Part shown: in pieces, positions 15,941 through 56,462 of the stretch
Position numbering within the stretch: the first letter of the stretch is position 1
How the letters are laid out: every line of letters begins with the position of its first letter
Source: Oopsacas minuta
Taxonomy: Eukaryota > Animalia > Porifera
Length of the DNA stretch: 64,000 nucleotides
Assembly: GCA_024704765.1 (NCBI GenBank)
Contig: JAKMXF010000321.1
Location: 992,001-1,056,000, forward strand
Direction of reading: 5' to 3'
Program-made: the position numbers and the translations under genes
Notes under the pieces: model-generated
What the model saw: the letters and a program-made list of their open reading frames with translations, nothing else
What the model was told of the DNA's origin: nothing
The model's database searches: none

Positions 15941-16320
15941 TTAAATTCAGAATGTATTGTTTAGAGTTTAGGAATTATAATATATAAGGGACGTAAACTG
16001 GCCTGAGAAGCAATCCTACGTATTTACAATCATGAGCGAAGCTGTATTAACTCATTGTGAATTGTCAACAACTAATTTTTGTTCACGATATGAAAATGAG
16101 TTGTTTGATAACAATTCATGATTAGGTGCAAGTACACTTTTTTGGATAGTGAAGTCGTAGAATTCATATACAAACACTTGACATAGTATCAACAACATGT
16201 TCGAATATTTATTTTCTGCGTGGATCATTCTCAGACCAAATTGTAACTTAAAAGAAACTATAATGTAAATGTATAAAAGATACAGATGGATCTTTCTGAT
16301 AATTTAATCAAATATATAAA

Positions 16321-16640
16321 TACAGTGGATGCTGGTTGTAAGAACATCGTCGGGAACTGGACATAATGTTCTTATATCCGGCATGTAGGATTTTGGGGTG
16401 CCGGTTATGAAAACACTTTATTCGAACAGATTTGGATGTAAGAACAATATTATGGGAAGACGTTCTCATATCTACTGGATAATTATGCCAATTCAACAAC
16501 CATACCGGTAATAAGAACCAATTAGACTGCTACTCTAAGAGTGTTCTTAGAACCGGTATGAATTATATTGGGGCGTATGGCAACTGTTTTCCAGTAAATT
16601 GTTCTTATAACCCGCATGTTCTTATCCGGCATCTACTGTA
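16321..16640. mobile_element. Pogo/Tigger-like MITE
   Basis: TA-CAGTGGATGCTGGTTGTAAGAACAT versus reverse-complemented end TA-CAGTAGATGCCGGATAAGAACAT. Confidence 0.7.
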
Positions 16641-16821
16641 TTTAACGTTCTACGTGGTTCTATAGCCTTCCGATTGTTAGGAGTCGATAATATAAAAGGA
16701 TAAATTCTTTAGTCCACTCATAATCTCTCTTTCTTAAAAGTCTTATTGAGGATATGATTTATAATATATCCTCTATTAACTAACATCAAAATGAATTATT
16801 GACTGAACCAAACAAATTTGG

Positions 16822-17748
16822 NNNNNNNNNNNNNNNNNNNNNNNNNNNNNNNNNNNNNNNNNNNNNNNNNNNNNNNNNNNNNNNNNNNNNNNNNNNNNNN
16901 NNNNNNNNNNNNNNNNNNNNNNNNNNNNNNNNNNNNNNNNNNNNNNNNNNNNNNNNNNNNNNNNNNNNNNNNNNNNNNNNNNNNNNNNNNNNNNNNNNNN
17001 NNNNNNNNNNNNNNNNNNNNNNNNNNNNNNNNNNNNNNNNNNNNNNNNNNNNNNNNNNNNNNNNNNNNNNNNNNNNNNNNNNNNNNNNNNNNNNNNNNNN
17101 NNNNNNNNNNNNNNNNNNNNNNNNNNNNNNNNNNNNNNNNNNNNNNNNNNNNNNNNNNNNNNNNNNNNNNNNNNNNNNNNNNNNNNNNNNNNNNNNNNNN
17201 NNNNNNNNNNNNNNNNNNNNNNNNNNNNNNNNNNNNNNNNNNNNNNNNNNNNNNNNNNNNNNNNNNNNNNNNNNNNNNNNNNNNNNNNNNNNNNNNNNNN
17301 NNNNNNNNNNNNNNNNNNNNNNNNNNNNNNNNNNNNNNNNNNNNNNNNNNNNNNNNNNNNNNNNNNNNNNNNNNNNNNNNNNNNNNNNNNNNNNNNNNNN
17401 NNNNNNNNNNNNNNNNNNNNNNNNNNNNNNNNNNNNNNNNNNNNNNNNNNNNNNNNNNNNNNNNNNNNNNNNNNNNNNNNNNNNNNNNNNNNNNNNNNNN
17501 NNNNNNNNNNNNNNNNNNNNNNNNNNNNNNNNNNNNNNNNNNNNNNNNNNNNNNNNNNNNNNNNNNNNNNNNNNNNNNNNNNNNNNNNNNNNNNNNNNNN
17601 NNNNNNNNNNNNNNNNNNNNNNNNNNNNNNNNNNNNNNNNNNNNNNNNNNNNNNNNNNNNNNNNNNNNNNNNNNNNNNNNNNNNNNNNNNNNNNNNNNNN
17701 NNNNNNNNNNNNNNNNNNNNNNNNNNNNNNNNNNNNNNNNNNNNNNNN
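16822..17748. other. Assembly gap (927 N)
   Basis: Run of N; the X-filled ORFs across it are artefacts. Confidence 1.
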
Positions 17749-18704
17749 CTCTATATCGCTAAGAAGAAATTCTTTCCTGCCATGAATAGTCGTGTTATAG
17801 ATGCATACCATCTCTATAATCCCAAATTACATCATCAACAAAAATATTTTCTAAAACAATACAAGGTACTTGTTTTTGTTTTCTTATTTACTTTTGAATT
17901 ATATATTCTAAACAATTTAATCTTTTACAACTTGTATGTTATTTTTGAATCTATCTGTGTGAATGCTTGTTGGTTTCATGTGACTTACGATATTCCTATG
18001 TTCACAATACCAGAGTCTACGAATCATACTCTCAATATAATCAGCCATTACTTTTTAATATTGGTACATCTAGCTGACTTTATTATTTATTTCAATTTTA
18101 TTGTTGTGAATTCAACTTTTCTATTCTTTCTATTGTTGAAATTCTTTAGGAATAGAAAAGCCAGGAGATATCGATATCATGTATGTTCTGCTCCTTTGTT
18201 ACCAAATAAATAATAATTTATAACTTGTAATCATTATTGTTTCTTTATTCTCTTGTTATATAACCAAATTTGTTTCAGATTATTTTATTGTTTTTGTAGT
18301 TCGTTTAGTTCTGATTCAGATTTATTTGTCTTCTTTTACAAAAAATTAAATTTGGCTGCTGTGTTCATGTGATACTTAGGCGTTTATAGTATTCAATTAT
18401 CGCAAACTTAATTGTATTAAGCTCTTAAATCATTTTCATAATCAGGGTGGAAACGGCAATGATGTTAACAGCATAAGTATTTGAATAATTTCATTGGCCT
18501 GGGTATTGTAGACATAAACGGAATATATGTATATTTTCCAATATTTGAACAAGCAGGGATAGAAACAATAATTCAGGTATCTTGATCAAGCACTGATACA
18601 ATTACAGTTAAAATTATTCCATACAGCTCCAGCTGTGTTAATATTATTTCATCTGTTTTAGCAAATTCCTATATACACTTTCCACTTCAGAAATATGAGG
18701 TCTA

Positions 18705-46622: not shown

Positions 46623-47688
46623 CAAATGATTTGGATATTCACAAGCCTTGAAGCCATTTTCTAGCCCCTCGCGGGGCGCATATTCAGAGAAATACTGTTG
46701 AAATTTGTTAAAAATTGTAAATGTTACAAGATCGAAAAACCAATAGGCATATTTCTGTTTATTGAATAATTATTTGAATAAAGCTCCGTAATCTAGGGGA
46801 GGAGGTATTTAAATTTAATGAGCGGACGGGGAGGATTCGAGCAAAGTAAATTGAATAAATAGGTCAAAATGTGAAGTCTTTGGTGCCATGGCCTCACTGA
46901 ACTTTATAATAGATTTCCCCACTTATAGAAGGAAATTTCAAATGGTATCTGACATAATTATCTCTAAAGTATCCCATTCCCTACTTAAGAGGTTGCACTG
47001 TATATAAATGTTTGTTTTAAATACTTTTCTATTTCAGGTGAGACTTAGCCACTATATAGGATAGTAGTATTGGTATTAAGGCAAGTAAAAAATGGGGCTT
47101 TTCCAAACCCGACCGAAATTGTATCGGGTTTCGGGATGGTTGGATAGTCAGGGTTTAATAATTATTATAATATAGGATATTTAATGAAAGCCACATATTT
47201 TCGAGGCTGTATTTGAGTGGTAAAATTGACAAAAAAGAGGTTAAGAAAGATAATTAGCGAAATTTTATGGTCAAATTGCAATAAGATCATCTAGATTCTA
47301 GAAAAACAAATTATTGGTAAATCAAGGGGGAAACTGTTTTCGTGGGTTGTATCTACATAAACAGGAATGGAAAATTTTACAGTCTAACCTTAGAAATTTC
47401 TAAAATAGATATTTAGGAGGAAAAGTTTGCTGCGAAATAAAACCGGATAAACTTGCGAAATTTAAGAACCACTGATCTAGGATATCCATCTCCTCCTTAG
47501 CATTCTCAATATTATTAAGTACCCAATATGTCACTACATGATCTACTACTAGGAACACTTTATTCGAATTTACATTGACTTCATCTGGTTTTTTATCACA
47601 TTTGTCCTAACTGACCTTTCATCGTTAGCTGGGATTCACCAGTCTAAATCTCGACCGGTTCAATCTCTAATATGGACTATGGATTAAT

Positions 47689-48834
47689 ATGTCAAGCAGT
47701 TTGTTTATAGAAATGGATGAGGGTGATGACGTCGTTCCAATTGTGATAGATAGTGGTGCCAGAGGAACAAAAGCAGGTTTTGGTGGAGAAAACTCTCCTC
47801 GGGTAGTTTTCCCCAGCATTGTAGGTAGGGTTTGTCACCAGGGAGTAATGGTAGGCATGCCACACCGTTATGTATATGTGGGAGAGGAAGCTCAGAGTAA
47901 AAGAGCTATTCTAACGCTTAAAAATCCTATTGAACACGGTATAGTGACTAATTGGGATGATATGGAAAAGATATGGCATCACACATTCTACAATGAACTA
48001 AGGGTCGCTCCAGAAGAACACCCTGTCTTACTCACTGAGGCTATTTTCAATCCAAAAGCTAACCGAAAGATGACTGCACAAATAATGTTTGAGACATTCA
48101 ACAATCCTGCATTGTACATTTCCAACAATCAGGTGCTATCTTTGTACTCAAAAGGCAATACCACAGGAGTTGTAGTGGATTCAGGACTCGATTCAACACG
48201 AATAGTACCCATATACAAGGGACATGTGCTGGGTCATAGTGTTGAAAGACTGGGTATTGGAGGGGGACAGATTACTGACTATCTTATGAAACTATTGGCT
48301 GAATACGGGCATTCTTGGTGTTGTGGAGGTGAAACTGAATTGATGAATGACATCAAAGAAAAACTCGGTTACGCCAGAAAGAGCCTACCCAATGAAACAG
48401 GTGATGCTAACGTTGAGGTACTATATGAACTACCAGATGGACAGGAAATACCAATTAGAGAGGAACGATACAGATGTGTGGAGCCAGTATTTAACCCCTC
48501 CCTGATCGGATCAGAAGAAAATAGTATCCACGTATCAACTAACAATGCAATATTGAAAAGTGATTCAGATCTTCATAAACACTTATACAATAATATAGTA
48601 TTGTCAGGGGGTAACACTATGTTCCCTGGAATAGCTGAGAGACTATACAGTGAAGTATCAAACTTGGCTCCGAGTACCGCATCCATCAGAGTAATAGCAC
48701 ATCCTGAAAGGAAATACAGTGCGTGGATTGGTGGATCTATACTTTCTTCAATTGATAGTTTTGAGAAAATCCTTATTCCAAAAGTTAGTTATGATGAATA
48801 TGGACCAGAGATTGTTGATAGGAAATTTTTCTAG
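47689..48834 (+). CDS. Divergent intronless actin / actin-like protein, 381 aa (alternative start 47713)
   Basis: Full-length actin fold: D-loop [84 protein letters not shown]. Intact ORF, colinear with conventional actin apart from a 10-aa N-terminal extension and a 4-aa deletion. Confidence 0.95.
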
Positions 48835-49126
48835 CTATCATTTGTATGTATATAGGGAGTATAAATTTGAGTATGTCACGAAAAAAATGGCCAGGCCCGA
48901 CCAAATTTGGCAGGCCAAAAATGGTGCCACTTGGATTTGTTTAGGAGTGGAGTTAAAACAGTTAACCGTCTAACAGTTCTACTAACGGTAACTAACTATA
49001 TCTTGCTAACACCTGCTGGCTAACTTTTCATGGGCTTCTTCTGACTGCCCCATGTATCATGGAGTGTTACACTGCCAGCTGCTGATGCTTCTCAAACTTA
49101 TTATTCTCATTATTCTATTACCTATG

Positions 49127-49170
49127 TTCCGCGCCAAGACTTACCTCTATTGAAAATTTTTGGCGCGGAA
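49127..49170. promoter_or_regulatory. Inverted pair of E2F-type sites
   Basis: TTCCGCGCCAA (49127-49137) and TTGGCGCGGAA (49160-49170) form a perfect 11-bp inverted repeat with a 22-nt spacer. The second copy sits in TTTTTGGCGCGGAA, matching the E2F consensus TTTSSCGC. They lie 20 bp upstream of an ATG. Confidence 0.5.
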
Positions 49171-49190
49171 TATCTATACAAATCTATACT

Positions 49191-49415
49191 ATGTGTATTA
49201 GCAAGATGGCAACCTCACAACTTAGGTATATTTGTGGTGGTGTCTGTGGCTTTGAAGCATGTCTACAGGAATTCCTAACCGAGAAGGAACTGACGATGCA
49301 CTGTATCAATGAAGATGAAACTCAGGTGCACGCCATTAGACCTTTCTGCGCGCAATGTTTTATGATATTCGATGATTACGACAACCCAGTTGTCCATCAA
49401 TGTGAACTCGGAAAG
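49191..49415 (+). CDS. Zinc-finger exon, probable first coding exon of the MARF1-like gene
   Basis: Encodes Cx4C-x12-H and Cx2C-x12-HxC with C2H2-type Cx3F spacing. Ends in phase 0 at a consensus donor AAG|GTAAGT. A phase-0 acceptor CATAG| at 51701/51702 is in frame with the ATG at 51720. Confidence 0.5.
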
Positions 49416-50915
49416 GTAAGTAATCAAATTTCATATTTGGATTCAGGTTCTTATTTCTAAATTTAGACCAAAGAAGCGGACCTAACATTTAAGCATTTTG
49501 AATTCGATAAGATTTGTCTTGTATTGAAAACTCTTTCGATAATAACACCTTTATGGAGCCGGGGCATAGTCAGGGGGAATTGTGAGACCCGCAGCTCTCT
49601 CTTTCACTATTTGTGCACTATGTGGGGTCAAATTAGACCCCACATATTTGGTGTCATTTTGACCCCACTCCGTCAATATGACAGAAGTCAATGGAATTCT
49701 GGTCAAATTGGGGTCTGTTCTTACCCCGCTCAGTCAACTTTGGATAATTGTTTATCTCAATCGACGCTGTGTTAATTAAACTCTTAGGATTGTACGATAA
49801 ATATTTTTATTTGCCTAGTTAGCCAACGACAAAATATAATCATTATTCTCACTGTTGGACTAATCCTTGTCAAACTCCCGGAAATTTCGGTTTTTTATTT
49901 GGGAGTAGTACAGTAACGGTACCGGGATCGAGTAAATTCACCTTGCAGTACTGGTACCTGTGTCATAATGCCGCGTGTCCCCCAGGACCTGTGTCCCTAA
50001 GGTAAAACGTCCTTGTAGCACTAGGATGAGGAGTCCTCATTTAGGATATGTTGAAAACGCGAACTTTCCCACACTCGAATGTCCATGGAGGGGTCACACA
50101 ATTGCTTGTATTTTATATTTGCTCTATGGGACTGTAACAAATCCAATGGGCGGGCCTTAAGCTCCCTGTCCCTGGCAGAGCCCGTTTGAGAAATTCCAGG
50201 CCCTGGTGCTACAATAGGTCCCAGGCCCCTATCTGTTCTTGCGAATGAAAAATTTTAGGGACACAATTACATTTCTAAACGTTTCAAATAAGAAATCTAT
50301 GATATATTGAATATTTACATATTATTGAATATGCCATGATTTACTTTGCTACCTTACCCAGTAGAGTCTACGATATCACGAGGCCCTCGTAATATCGTTT
50401 CATTTATCCCGTCTCTAATACAATAGCAAGTACCGTCGGGATGTCATCCCGAGCCTTTAATCCTGAATTATTCTATTTTATTCCGATATTCTACGGATTA
50501 CAGATTTGCCTCAAGGTCAAATAATCGCGAAAGTCGGTTGAGAAGCACTTCTTCACATGTAAGTGTCTCTCTAAGAATCTGGGTATGCTTGATGGCACTT
50601 TTTTGTACGGAATTTATTGATCCTGTACGTGTTTGAAAGATCGGCACTTTGTGTCCTTCATTGCTGGCTGAAATAGTACAAGTTACCCGCCACGCACCTA
50701 AATACACCTTGTCCCGATATATCCCTATTAAGCGGAGTCTTTTGTATTAATAAGAGTCCCCAAAGGGGAACATCTCGCCCTAGGGCCAGATGTTCAGGGG
50801 ACTCCTTAGGTATGAAAATATACAGATTAGAAATTTTTCAAATCAACTAGATGTCACTACAAGTACACATGCCAAATTTGGTGTCTTAGGTGTGAACTGC
50901 AGGGCGAAACATATC

Positions 50916-51101
50916 CAGTGGAGTCTCCAAAAAACGGTACTCCGAGAAGCGGACAACCCCCTACAACGGACAAACCTCGTGGCACGGATTGAATTTGCCA
51001 AGCATGTAATTACTACTTGAGCAGTCTCCGAGGAGCGGACAATTCTCTACAACGGATAAATACCATATCCCCAACGTGTCCGTTATTCGGAGACTCCACT
51101 G
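50916..51101. mobile_element. Pogo/Tigger-like MITE
   Basis: CAGTGGAGTCTCCAAAAAACGG versus reverse-complemented end CAGTGGAGTCTCCGAATAACGG, with TA on the right. Confidence 0.7.
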
Positions 51102-51719
51102 TAGATATATATAGCCACTATGCTATGTAATAGAAGTAGTCGGCACAGTAAAAAGCGCAATTCAGACTATTCCATTTACTGGAATAGTAATTTCTCGATC
51201 CGATGTATTATATATGGACCATTGAAATTTCATAATCGTATCCTGAGTCTTAGGATACCTGAAAGAAATGTTTAACCGAATACTGCTGGGGAGACGTGCC
51301 ATTTTATGACTTCCTTTTCGTTACGAACGTAATACTTCGGCCATAATCTGGAATGCCCTATAACACCAACGATAGAATCGTTTTGTATTAGTTTTCTATG
51401 AAAAGACCAAGGATTCTCTAGTAAGTAGAAACCCAAAATTGTGAGACATACGACGAGATCGTGAGAGTTGAGAGCACTGTATTTCTACACCAAAACAGAA
51501 ATACATTTAGTTCCTATTTGGGCAATGTTTCAATTTCTTTCCAGTAAGATTATATATATATATTTATATATATATATTCAGGATGATATGGCAGAATAAA
51601 GTACTGTACGAATTGCTATTACCAGCAGTAACATATTGTTGAACTTCAATAGACCTAATAGCTCCTTTCTATGTAGATTTATGTAAGTAATTATGTCATA
51701 GGCTCAAGCCCAGATCAGC

Positions 51720-53819
51720 ATGGCTCTGTCACAATGTGATACAACTATAATAGACTTAACTTTAGGAGGTCAGCTGGGAGATGAACTATGTTCATTCAGA
51801 CATGAAGATTGGCTCTTGTCTAAAATCCCATTACAATCGGATTCATCTAGTGATGACGGTATCCTAGATGAGACAGTTATTCCTATTACAGCTGCTGGTA
51901 AGAAGAGGAAATCTATGCAAGATATTAGCTCACCTGAGGGAAGGAGGAAGAGTCCTAGAATTGAAGCAAAGAGAAACCAAAAACCAATTACTGAGAAATC
52001 AACCAGGAATAAACGCGATGAGCAATCTAAAAATAAACAAATCTTTAATGATACCAAAACTGAGCCTGAACTAGATAGCACTGTTATATCGGGTAGTTTA
52101 GGATCAAAGCTACCTGTAATATCACCAATCAGGTTTGTTCCTGAATCAACAATCACTTCTTCTGTCATAAAGCCTAACATTTCTATTACTAAAATGGTTT
52201 CTAAACAGAAAAAAATGAGGATTGTACAACCGACTAATCCAGTTAAATGCTCTTCTACTCAATCTATTGCATCAATTTTAAATAAACGAATACCCACCCC
52301 TCCTAAACCTTCAGTCACAACTGCTCGATCTAATCAACAGGAAATCTCGACTAAACCATCAGATACACAAATCCACACGAGATCTGTCCCTCAAACTGAG
52401 GATTCGAACCAGCAAAAAGTGTTAGAAAACACGGGTATATTCTGGGATATTGAGAATATAGCTATTCCTCCTAACATCAGTGTATCTTCTCTAGTGAGAA
52501 AAATAAGAAATACCTTTGTTGGCATAGATAAGAGAGAAGTAGAGTTCATGTGTGTATGTGATGTCCATAAAGAGAACAGGTATGTATTTATATTTACCGA
52601 GCATTTTAATTTAAATAGTTCTGTGCTATGCGGCGATACTAGCTATTTCATTTGTATTGCTATTGTAGAACATACCTTTCCTGTCCATTGTCTCCTAAAA
52701 TACTATGTAACTATCAAAAGCATCATTTATTAGACTAGATGTTAACCTAAAGTTAACTACTATGACATACAGCCTCACCTTAGCGGATTCTAGCTTCAGT
52801 TATTCTTAATGTTTATGTATTGCCTTCTTTGTAGACAAATGATAGATGAGCTGAATTCGTGTAACGTTACGATAGTACATGTGGCCTGCTTCTCTAAAAA
52901 CGCAGCTGATGAGAGGCTGAAGCACTATCTTTACAGATTCGCTCAAACCTATCCTCCTCCCAGCACAGTTGTAGTGCTTAGTGGAGATGTAAACTTTGCT
53001 CATGTGATATCTAACTTAAGTCATTTCTACACACTCCAAACTGTTCTTATACATAACCTTCAGTGCTCTACTGTCCTCAAGGATTCTGCTCATAAGAGTA
53101 TTCTATTCGACGAGTTCATACAAGGAATTGGTTGGTAATTTTAGTACATGCTGTATATAGTGATAATTCCTCTCTTACCAATTCTATCACTATATCCATC
53201 TACTGTAATATTCATAAATAATAGGTAATAATGTTTATTTTATACAGAGCTTGATGCGGAGTTTGCCAAAATTTAGTAACTAACCAGCTTAGATTCAGAA
53301 ATTCAATAAGTATTACGTAATTATTATCAATCGATTTGGAACATTTATCATCCGTTAAAATTATAATCATATACATAAATGTTGGATCTTGGATGACAAC
53401 CTGCAGTGCGGTTCTCTTTACCCAATTCCACTAGTAATTATCATTTGAAGCTATTTTGATTAATATTTGAAATCTGATTTATCATTTAATAAATGTGTGT
53501 ATGTTTCCTAATACATGTAAGATACTATTTTATTTTCTCAGGTCCTCCACGTAGAGTGACACACAATCAACCCAGCTTCCTCCTGATTGACAATCTCCCC
53601 AGGATAGCTTATGGAGAATTGTATAATCGTTTAGACAGATTGTGTGATAACACGGGTGGGAAGATAGTTAATCTCGACCAAATGATGGGAGTTATCAGAT
53701 TTTCTACTCTCGAGCTATGCATCAGAGCTCAAAAGAGATTGAATAACCATTATCTTAGACAGGGGATGTGTCCTATTAGAGCTAGATTCTCTCCTGACAC
53801 CATCCAAACATTTAGATGA
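51720..53819 (+). CDS. MARF1: MARF1/Limkain-b1-like NYN ribonuclease with one RRM, 477 aa from this ATG
   Basis: Exons 51720-52579, 52835-53130, 53542-53819 (1434 nt, phases 2 and 1). NYN domain GIFWDIEN..REVEFMCVCD..KNAADERL..VLSGDVNFA; RRM1 LLIDNLP..NRLDRLCDNTGGKI..RAQKRL. Both match the recalled MARF1 NYN and RRM1. Confidence 0.88.
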
Positions 53820-56462
53820 ATTCAAATTAGGTTATAACACGTCTGTTACAACCTCACTGTTATAGGTAAACTGATAGGCTATTTCTATTTATCACAATAG
53901 ATTTTAGCTTGTTGGTGTTCTCACTTATTGGTACTGGAGTACAGAACGAGTTCTTAATTTCCTTTTATGTTTGTCGCAAATATATCACAATTTGTACAGT
54001 TGTATTAAATATAACAGCCACTCATTTCAGGTCCCTACTCCCAAGTGGAGATTTGTGTTAATTCCGTTCCCCTATTAGCAACTAAAACTCGTGCAAAATA
54101 CGAGTTGCTAATAAAGGAACTACAATGCAAGCCTAACTATCTGCATTCATACACTAGCTTTCTGTGACAATATGTATACATTACATTAGCACCTTTGGCT
54201 TACAAAACATGGTCCGTAATTCAGTATGTAATACATTGAATCATTCAGCTCAGGAAAGGCGGAAATTTTAGTCATGCAAGCTTCAGGTCCGGCCATCTTC
54301 CGTATCAGCTCAGCTCCGCCTGCGTTGCTAACTTTGTCCAAAGCCCAAATTTTGAAAGATAAGAATTAGTGTTACCTCGTTTGGTTTCCTCCAGTTCAAG
54401 TGAGTCGCTAGGTTTATTTGGTTCTTGCTAGTTGGTGCTGGCTCTTGAGGTTTACCTACACTTGTGTAGGGTTTTTTCCTTAACTTAGAGGTCTTTCAGT
54501 GGGTGCCTTGGGTGGTGGTGGACTTGAGGGCCGCTGGTTCGCTAAGCACCAACCACTTCTGCCCAGGTGGGCTTGTTCCACTGCTCATGTGTGTCCTTCT
54601 GAAAAGTCTTCAGTGGCAGCCTCCTAGTGAAGGTTAAAATTTCACACCTCGAATGTAAATTTAACAGCTTTCAGTTGGGGGCTCATATGTGTATCCGTGG
54701 CTGTCATTTCGCCTGGGTCATCTGTAGATCCCTTCGGGAGCATTTGGGTATTATATGTTGAGTGTTGCTCCTTGGTTCGGTACTGGTCCTTGCATTCCTC
54801 CGGGAACTCCGTTATCTAACCGTCGTAGCCTTCTAGCGGCATTGGAATTTGTATATTTTAATTTGGAAGGTATTGTTAATCTTAATGTATGGCTATTCCC
54901 CATTCCCAGCTTATATAGGTTCGTTTCTATGTAGAAGTACGAAAGCCCACACAAATTGCCCGCACATATAGAGACCCCACTTATAGAGGTTGTATTGCAT
55001 ATAGAAGGACACACAGCCATAAAACAGTATACTGTACTTCCAAAGAAAGACATCTGGTTACCCTGGTGCATAGTCCGTGAGCTTTTTCTTCCATTCAAGC
55101 TTGTCAAAAGGTGGCCAGGTCATGTCATGTTTTGACCTTTTGACAAGCCTTACCTGACCTGACTCAAAATGACCTTCATTTTCAAGTCATATACAGCTAA
55201 TTTGAGGCTAATTTCTGGCCAATTATGGAATTTATTCAAACAGCTATACTAGACCGAATTTGAATATCATATCTTTATTTAATGGTATTCGTTTCTAAGT
55301 TCAATAATTCATAAAGAATGAATAATTCATCATCTAATATTAATTTTGGACAAGAAATATATTTTTAAGAGGTTTGACCAGCATTTGTAGCAAAAACTTG
55401 TATTATGCATGTAAAATTAGTTTCTCATCAGGAATTTCTTCGGAAAACTGGCACGGTGTACCCCCCTGAAAAGAACAAAATACATAACCCTGAGCTGCAC
55501 TAACAGTCTGTCGGCTGGACATTTTAAAATTAAATTCATTCTAGTAAATTATGCTAATTAGACTCTCAGTGTTATGTTAGGGTTACTTTTCTTATAAACT
55601 ATTATCCTTTCTTGTATATATTTTGCACTATACCGAAAAACGGAGTGCTGACCAGCATATTGAGAGTAATTGGTAGGTGGTCCTTGCAGTATACGGATTT
55701 ACATGAAGAATAATCGAGTTTTAATTATATAGTTTGTTAATTGAATCGTTCATTATTTTTTCAATTAATTGTCAACTTAGGTCCGTTTTAACATACGTAT
55801 ACGATTTGAAATTATACACTGATACACACTATTGATAATAGCTACATATTTGTGAATAATTCTAACTTCATTTATGTAGTATATGAAGATATTTGACATG
55901 ACTGTATACTGGACGATTTCACGCATATTTCCTCTGCTATGATTTGATTTCAATATATTTCCATATTGAGCTCACAAGGACAATTCAAGGTGTAGAACAA
56001 ATCAATTTTCTATTATCTGTACTAATATCCAAGATATCTTTACATCAACTATTTGAACTCATTTATCTTATGTCATGTCATAATATTTTATTATAAATTC
56101 TCAAATAATTCCGTGTCGTCTGCATTTAATATGCACGGGAAGGTTCTAACATTTCCGGTATAGACACGAATAAATATATACTTATTGAGAAGGATATGAC
56201 TTATGCTACTGAACCTAATCTCACTTACTATTACCCAATTCAATATTTGATGATACAATATCTTATTAGCTCACACCTTACTGACAATTATCATTTCAGA
56301 AACCCCCAATACCTAATACATAACGTGTCTCTATTTATACTAATTATATGTGTATCTGCCTATCAGTTAGTAACCATATAAATCCTATAACTATGATTTC
56401 TCAATCGAATCTCCACAAATAGCAATTAATTAGGTATCTTATGCAATTGCCTCATACTCTTG

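Follow-up and report, generated by a model that had tools for sequence, protein, structure and literature searches.

Analysis of a 64,000-nucleotide stretch of the genome of the glass sponge Oopsacas minuta (C321:992001-1056000, here called the window) identified one four-exon gene on the forward strand, at window positions 49206 to 53819, which encodes a short protein of the MARF1 family. The first exon encodes a putative double zinc-binding module, and the remaining exons encode a NYN nuclease domain and one RRM. Comparison with related sponge assemblies and with a second, full-length MARF1 gene of O. minuta suggests that the window gene is very probably an ancient MARF1 paralogue under purifying selection, in which the N-terminal third of the MARF1 architecture has been kept, and that the module is present throughout the lineage. 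Genome-wide searches covered the assembly of 61.5 Mb in 365 contigs. The searches were run exon by exon, and a GenBank protein, KAI6649461.1 (P0027), stood in for the whole product. The parts of the gene are as follows.

49206 to 49415, forward strand: exon 1, encoding the 70-residue predicted double zinc-binding module
49416 to 51701, forward strand: intron 1 (GTAAGT...TAG), 2,286 nt, enlarged by repeats
51702 to 52579, forward strand: exon 2, encoding a conserved 35-residue motif starting AQAQISMALSQC, a Ser/Lys-rich linker, and, from 52431, the N-terminal third of the NYN domain (FWDIEN, Asp319)
52835 to 53130, forward strand: exon 3, encoding the rest of the NYN domain with NAADE (Asp388/Glu389) and GDVNF (Asp414)
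53542 to 53819, forward strand: exon 4, encoding a MARF1-type RRM1, stop codon TGA

KAI6649461.1 (553 amino acids), which is annotated as "Meiosis arrest female protein 1-like [Oopsacas minuta]" and surfaced in a profile search with the zinc module, is the product of this gene. The four exon translations tile it exactly (residues 1-70, 71-362, 364-461, and 463-553), and the split codons AG/A and G/GT give R363 and G462, respectively. The gene model is already public in GenBank and hence is not new. The O. minuta annotation was produced by BRAKER with RNA-seq hints and an intron limit of 5 kb (PMC10280926). A model of this origin is compatible with read support for the junction between 49415 and 51702 and is no proof of it.

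Exon 1 ends in phase 0 at the donor AAG/GTAAGT (49415/49416). The acceptor of intron 1 reads ...TGTCATAG/GCT at 51701/51702. The TAG of this acceptor is a stop codon in the frame of exon 2, which therefore cannot be open any further upstream, and six codons (AQAQIS) precede the Met at 51720 in the same frame. The boundaries of intron 2 are CAG/GTATGT...TTTGTAG/A, and those of intron 3 are TTG/GTTGGT...TCTCAG/G. The ATG at 49206 (MAT...) is the conserved start, and an in-frame ATG at 49191 is not conserved. A preliminary description of this locus had proposed the same phase-0 donor, the same acceptor, and the reading of AQAQIS into Met 51720, and all of these were present. Its length of about 553 to 558 amino acids for the product corresponds to the 553 residues of KAI6649461.1, with the start at 49191 not conserved, and the NYN and RRM domains that it had assigned were recognized by Pfam at the end of exon 2 and in exon 3 (NYN) and in exon 4 (RRM_MARF1).

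The central claim of that description, that the finger exon is spliced onto the nuclease gene, was supported by comparison with loci from three other ENA assemblies (L020, L021, and L022), which together with O. minuta represent four species. The same four exons were found in the same order at all three loci. In all four species, exon 1 ends with GGN AAG/GT, i.e., Gly-Lys followed by the GT of the donor, and exon 2 opens immediately after AG with GCN CAR GCN CAG ATC AGC ATG GC. The codons for AQAQIS differ only at third positions, all changes being synonymous, and upstream of the acceptor AG the similarity between the four species is gone. Read-through tails past the Gly-Lys are not conserved and run for unequal lengths before a stop. 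In exon 1, the rate of nonsynonymous substitution (dN) was 0.14 to 0.23, while that of synonymous substitution (dS) was saturated; dN/dS was about 0.14 where it could be computed. In the full-length paralogue on contig C11, the module and the NYN domain lie within one open reading frame (ORF). The annotated model, the agreement of four species in donor, acceptor, phase, and coding signature, and the one-ORF paralogue together provide strong comparative support for splicing of the zinc-module exon to the NYN/RRM gene.

This paralogue is located at C11:427016-432346 (L014:2016-7346). It is a single intronless ORF of 1,776 codons and represents the full-length MARF1 of O. minuta, with the following domains.

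Residues 1 to 75: zinc module
Residues 145 to 282: NYN
Residues 305 to 371: RRM_MARF1
Residues ~974 to 1030: OST-HTH (LOTUS)

The first 75 residues align to exon 1 of the window gene with all eight Cys/His positions kept, and the module lies 70 residues before the NYN domain. When only the exons of the four short genes went into the profile, it matched the C11 N terminus at an E-value of 3e-5 in a six-frame genome search, so the homology does not depend on mixing both groups. Alignment of the short and full-length module profiles by hhalign gave a probability of 97.3% (E 2.2e-11, 64 columns). Seven orthologues of the full-length protein from other assemblies (P0001 to P0007; 55 to 70% identity) carry the same N-terminal module, and lepidopteran MARF1 proteins do not. 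Described MARF1 proteins comprise NYN, two RRMs, and LOTUS domains only (PMC6294520, PMC5499597), in agreement with the preliminary description, according to which N-terminal zinc fingers are not known in this family.

Pfam recognizes one OST-HTH stretch only in the C11 protein, and its other LOTUS repeats must therefore be very divergent. Orthologues in three other assemblies (L015 to L017) are likewise intronless, and the C11 gene may be a retrogene. When MARF1 introns of Manduca sexta were compared, two introns within the NYN domain were found at other positions, and the third was not placeable from the tblastn blocks. In two other assemblies (L016:1-1962 and L017:1-1241), the immediate upstream neighbor of full-length MARF1 is a DENND3-like gene.

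The module contains eight Cys/His ligands that are invariant in both the short and the full-length groups.

49233, 49245, 49260, 49299, 49347, 49356, 49395, and 49401, forward strand: codon starts of C10, C14, C19, H32, C48, C51, H64, and C66

They are arranged as C-x3-C-x4-C-x12-H (CCCH) and C-x2-C-x12-H-x-C (CCHC). The patterns given earlier, Cx4C-x12-H and Cx2C-x12-HxC, were correct as far as they went and overlooked an additional invariant Cys in finger 1. The complete set of residues invariant across both groups is C10, G12, C14, G15, C19, F23, H32, D37, F47, C48, C51, H64, and C66. Eight ligands would suffice for two zinc ions, and their conservation suggests that zinc is bound. In a HMMER search of 1.84 billion representative proteins, the module profile matched nine proteins at E ≤0.001. 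Six of the nine belong to this sponge MARF1 family, and the remaining three, unrelated repeat proteins, align over a short FCxKC...FF stretch; no MARF1 protein of other animals was matched among these representatives. The search for zinc-finger/NYN proteins elsewhere, which had been suggested earlier, placed the module among these representatives in the sponge group only. On the evidence of these comparisons, we regard the module as an undescribed domain specific to this lineage, which stands at the N terminus of all MARF1-family proteins detected in these sponges, LOTUS-bearing ones among them.

Pfam finds no match in exon 1 and assigns NYN (PF01936) to the last part of exon 2 together with exon 3. 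Residues 310 to 461 match the solved human and mouse NYN structures 6FDL (E 3e-40) and 5YAA (E 8e-40), and D319, D388/E389, and D414 align to human Asp358, Asp426/Asp427, and Asp452. Mutation of the metal-binding acidic cluster abolishes the RNase activity of human MARF1 (PMC6294520). The change of Asp427 to Glu is common to the short gene, the sponge full-length proteins, and lepidopteran MARF1. With its acidic cluster intact, the short protein is likely to be an active metal-dependent endoribonuclease like the human MARF1 NYN domain. RRM_MARF1 (PF11608) follows directly after NYN (E 3.3e-8; score of 34 bits, with the cut-off at 27; match to 2DIU at E 1e-5). The protein ends after RRM1 and has no second RRM. 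The position of the stop is shared with L020, and in L021 the stop comes a few residues sooner. No OST-HTH/LOTUS match was found by Pfam in the short product, and when the window, L020, and L021 were searched by tblastn with the 1,776-residue paralogue, there was no match past its residue 365.

The linker of the short protein contains three motifs of interest.

51747 to 51761, forward strand: IIDLT, a SUMO-interaction-like motif with a presumed function, nearly invariant in four species
51900 to 51914, forward strand: KKRKS, a basic cluster similar to a nuclear localization signal, conserved in four species
51942 to 51959, forward strand: RRKSPR, partly conserved

The linker motifs kept in the four species are TT(I/F)IDLT, ILDxT(V/I)IP, KKRKS, and RKSxR(I/L)(E/D)A. 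The basic linker with KKRK and RRKSPR had been pointed out before, and its KKRK is the part that is fully conserved. Full-length N termini have neither IIDLT nor KKRK. We take IIDLT to resemble the SUMO-interaction motifs (SIM) of PIAS type and KKRK to resemble a monopartite nuclear signal. The conserved KKRK is the one feature that would point to nuclear localization or to silencing of transposable elements (TE) by the short protein.

Genome-wide searches with single sequences, with DNA, and with profiles placed exon 1 at three sites only: the window exon itself, a truncated copy at a distance of 17.9 kb downstream, and the N terminus of the C11 MARF1 gene. The idea that exon 1 might be a multicopy TE fragment, which the preliminary description had named as a possible objection to its own reading, was rejected on this count. 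The truncated copy is part of a segmental duplicate at C321:1057378-1061479 (L018:1378-5479) that corresponds to window 47462 to 55724 at 98% identity. The duplicate takes in a divergent actin gene, exon 1 from the ATG at 49206 through its first 101 nt, and exon 4 together with 3' flanking sequence. Window 49307 to 53463 (4,157 bp) is missing from it, and the two parts meet at a 3-nt overlap. The duplicate is annotated as a 124-residue "MARF1-like" protein (KAI6649464.1, P0032), but its piece of exon 1 is disrupted by small indels and a premature stop, and the duplicate is either a broken remnant or an assembly feature. A retrocopy origin was rejected, since the last 78 nt of intron 3 are retained and the join lies inside exon 1, which identifies a segmental duplicate with a 4,157-bp deletion.

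Intron 1 contains the following dispersed elements.

50907 to 51113, strand not assigned: element of about 200 bp resembling a miniature inverted-repeat transposable element (MITE), with 27-nt inverted arms at 50911-50937 and 51080-51106
50057 to 50369 and 50373 to 50808, strand not assigned: two further dispersed repeats

The preliminary description of a 2,286-nt intron with a MITE was thus accurate in length and in content. Dozens of genomic copies of the MITE-like element were listed, with 84 to 92% identity, which suggests fairly recent activity of the family; a first look gave 440 candidates genome-wide. The orthologous introns are 514, 343, and 200 nt long, and the excess in O. minuta consists of repeats. 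The actin gene, which is intronless and divergent (window 47689 to 48834; Pfam Actin, E 8e-117), shares its strand with the MARF1-like gene, ends only about 370 nt before the start of the latter, and was not seen beside the orthologues in L020 to L022. The GC content falls to 17% in the 2-kb bin at window 16001 to 18000, compared to 30 to 42% elsewhere in the window.

To place the short gene, a tree was calculated on the part of the NYN domain encoded by exon 3. Sponge full-length and short genes formed one clade (99/99). The short genes were monophyletic (99/100), and their stem was long, at 0.91 substitutions per site. One further assembly (ERZ25072730) holds both a full-length gene (P0001) and a short gene (L022), as does O. 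minuta. The presence of the module before NYN in a LOTUS-bearing MARF1 indicates that the short paralogue already had the module when it lost LOTUS. The most economical reading of these data is a history of three steps. MARF1 would have acquired the zinc module in an ancestor of these sponges, and the gene would then have been duplicated. One copy would subsequently have lost RRM2, the LOTUS array, and the C terminus and evolved faster, though under constraint. This copy would also have gained a longer basic linker with conserved motifs (IIDLT, ILDxTxIP, and KKRK). In the resulting protein, RRM1 and the zinc module may choose substrates or partners, and the linker motifs may set its location. 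The short protein has neither LOTUS nor the C-terminal region, and it therefore probably acts apart from the route of the full-length protein.

Several points weigh against this reading. The outgroups of the exon 3 tree were Lepidoptera and one further sequence only. Zinc binding is deduced from the conserved ligands, and the label "glass sponges" for the related assemblies is one that we infer. Pfam searches with seven module sequences at E-values of up to 10 returned no meaningful family; the best zf-C2H2 (PF00096) value was 0.32, in one of the seven members, and the classical C-x2-4-C-x12-H-x3-5-H pattern was not matched. The structure prediction that had been proposed earlier was run on the module. 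An AlphaFold2 model from seven sequences showed two short strands and a helix at residues 26 to 34 bearing H32, with moderate confidence only (predicted local distance difference test score, pLDDT, of 65). With this model, Foldseek found no match in the PDB at E ≤0.001, all rows being C2H2 arrays at E ≥0.5. The junction is supported by annotation and comparative evidence, and a search of the protein collection found no short protein fragments spanning it. A conserved Met lies just after the acceptor, and an isoform of 477 residues from this internal start is possible.

The last two points would favor a different gene model, in which exon 1 lies outside the nuclease coding region, as a small gene of its own or as untranslated sequence, and the nuclease starts at Met 51720 with 477 residues. 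This Met is conserved in four species, and no transcript-derived fragment was found across the junction. The model is nevertheless very unlikely: it conflicts with the six codons before the Met, kept with synonymous changes only and conserved exactly as far as the AG, with the donor shared by four species in front of unconserved read-through tails, and with the C11 paralogue, which joins module and NYN in one ORF. Decay is scarcely credible as an explanation for the short gene. Two thirds of the family architecture are missing and the second copy, 17.9 kb downstream, is clearly broken, as might be expected if the short gene were a truncated pseudogene of full-length MARF1, but none of its four exons is disrupted in any of the four species, dN/dS is near 0.14, and the splice sites, stop, and active-site residues are kept.

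The preliminary description had suggested that the fingers may stand in for LOTUS domains as the targeting module of a distinct, possibly nuclear RNA-decay or TE-silencing effector. Taken strictly, this would mean that the fingers were newly grafted onto a LOTUS-less NYN nuclease and took over the targeting role of LOTUS. The short protein does combine fingers with the absence of LOTUS, and its conserved KKRK and basic linker are missing from full-length N termini. This proposal is unlikely, however, since in the same genome, and likewise in seven related assemblies, full-length MARF1 has both the module and OST-HTH, so that the module is older than the loss of LOTUS and was not recruited in its place. 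A modified form, in which a long-kept LOTUS-less paralogue couples the module to the SIM-like IIDLT and to KKRK and would work in the nucleus as an NYN endoribonuclease with a link to SUMO and with nascent or transposon RNA as its target, would be a role not known for any MARF1 protein and is doubtful. What the module itself binds is a separate matter. Its CCCH and CCHC patterns differ from the classical C2H2 type, it has no Pfam match to nucleic acid-binding fingers, and SIM-like motifs adjoin it in the short copy. It is thus possible, if less probable, that the module is a protein-interaction or regulatory domain serving dimerization, binding of ubiquitin or SUMO partners, or action on its own NYN domain. 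Against this, look-alikes of the module in the ESM Atlas were C2H2, zf-met, and JAZ-type fingers, some of them RNA-binding (scores of 0.93 to 0.95 with few shared features, which makes them a weak lead only); the nonsignificant Foldseek rows were all C2H2 arrays; and in Regnase-1 zinc fingers beside PIN-like RNases aid RNA binding (PMC5499597). By analogy with Regnase-1 and from these look-alikes, RNA would be the more likely guess for the target of the module, with a protein partner as the main rival. The preferred reading for the gene as a whole remains that of an ancient, constrained MARF1 paralogue with a lineage-wide module.

MARF1 is a germline and somatic mRNA-decay nuclease whose choice of targets is debated, with LOTUS, RRMs, and EDC4 under discussion. 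In this respect, the sponge group may offer a natural dissection of the protein, since a conserved full-length copy can be set against a conserved copy cut to the zinc module, NYN, and RRM1. The module could be a new RNA-binding or partner-binding unit. It is uncatalogued, with no Pfam entry, and is a candidate domain for family databases. The practical value of these results is modest and consists of a correction of the idea that fingers replace LOTUS, a well-supported gene model, and a domain definition.

Comparison with known systems places the window protein closest to human MARF1/Limkain-b1 (Q9Y4F3; NYN structures 6FDL and 5YAA, RRM structure 2DIU). Human MARF1 has endoribonuclease activity and binds the decapping factors EDC4 and DCP1:2 (PMC6294520, PMC7279887). 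Both proteins have the same NYN domain (E-values on the order of 1e-40), the same acidic residues except for the Glu noted above, and RRM1 directly after NYN. The window protein differs from the human protein in lacking RRM2, the LOTUS array, and the C-terminal region and in adding the N-terminal double zinc module, which was undetected in nonsponge MARF1. The full-length O. minuta MARF1 and P0001 to P0007 share with the window protein a homologous module, NYN, and RRM1 in the same order and form one clade with it in comparison to insect MARF1. The full-length O. minuta protein, however, has OST-HTH/LOTUS, about 1,400 further residues, and a short acidic/Ser linker without KKRK or IIDLT, and its gene has no introns, whereas the short gene has three. 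The NYN.1 cluster to which MARF1 belongs also includes Arabidopsis DNE1 and further proteins with OST-HTH, and DNE1 is a cytoplasmic decay endonuclease (PMC10226599, PMC5499597). DNE1 carries OST-HTH but has neither an N-terminal zinc module nor a MARF1-type RRM. Regnase-1/ZC3H12 likewise places a PIN-like endoribonuclease beside a zinc finger that aids RNA binding. These proteins belong to another PIN-like subfamily and carry a single CCCH finger C-terminal to the nuclease, with no sequence relation detected.

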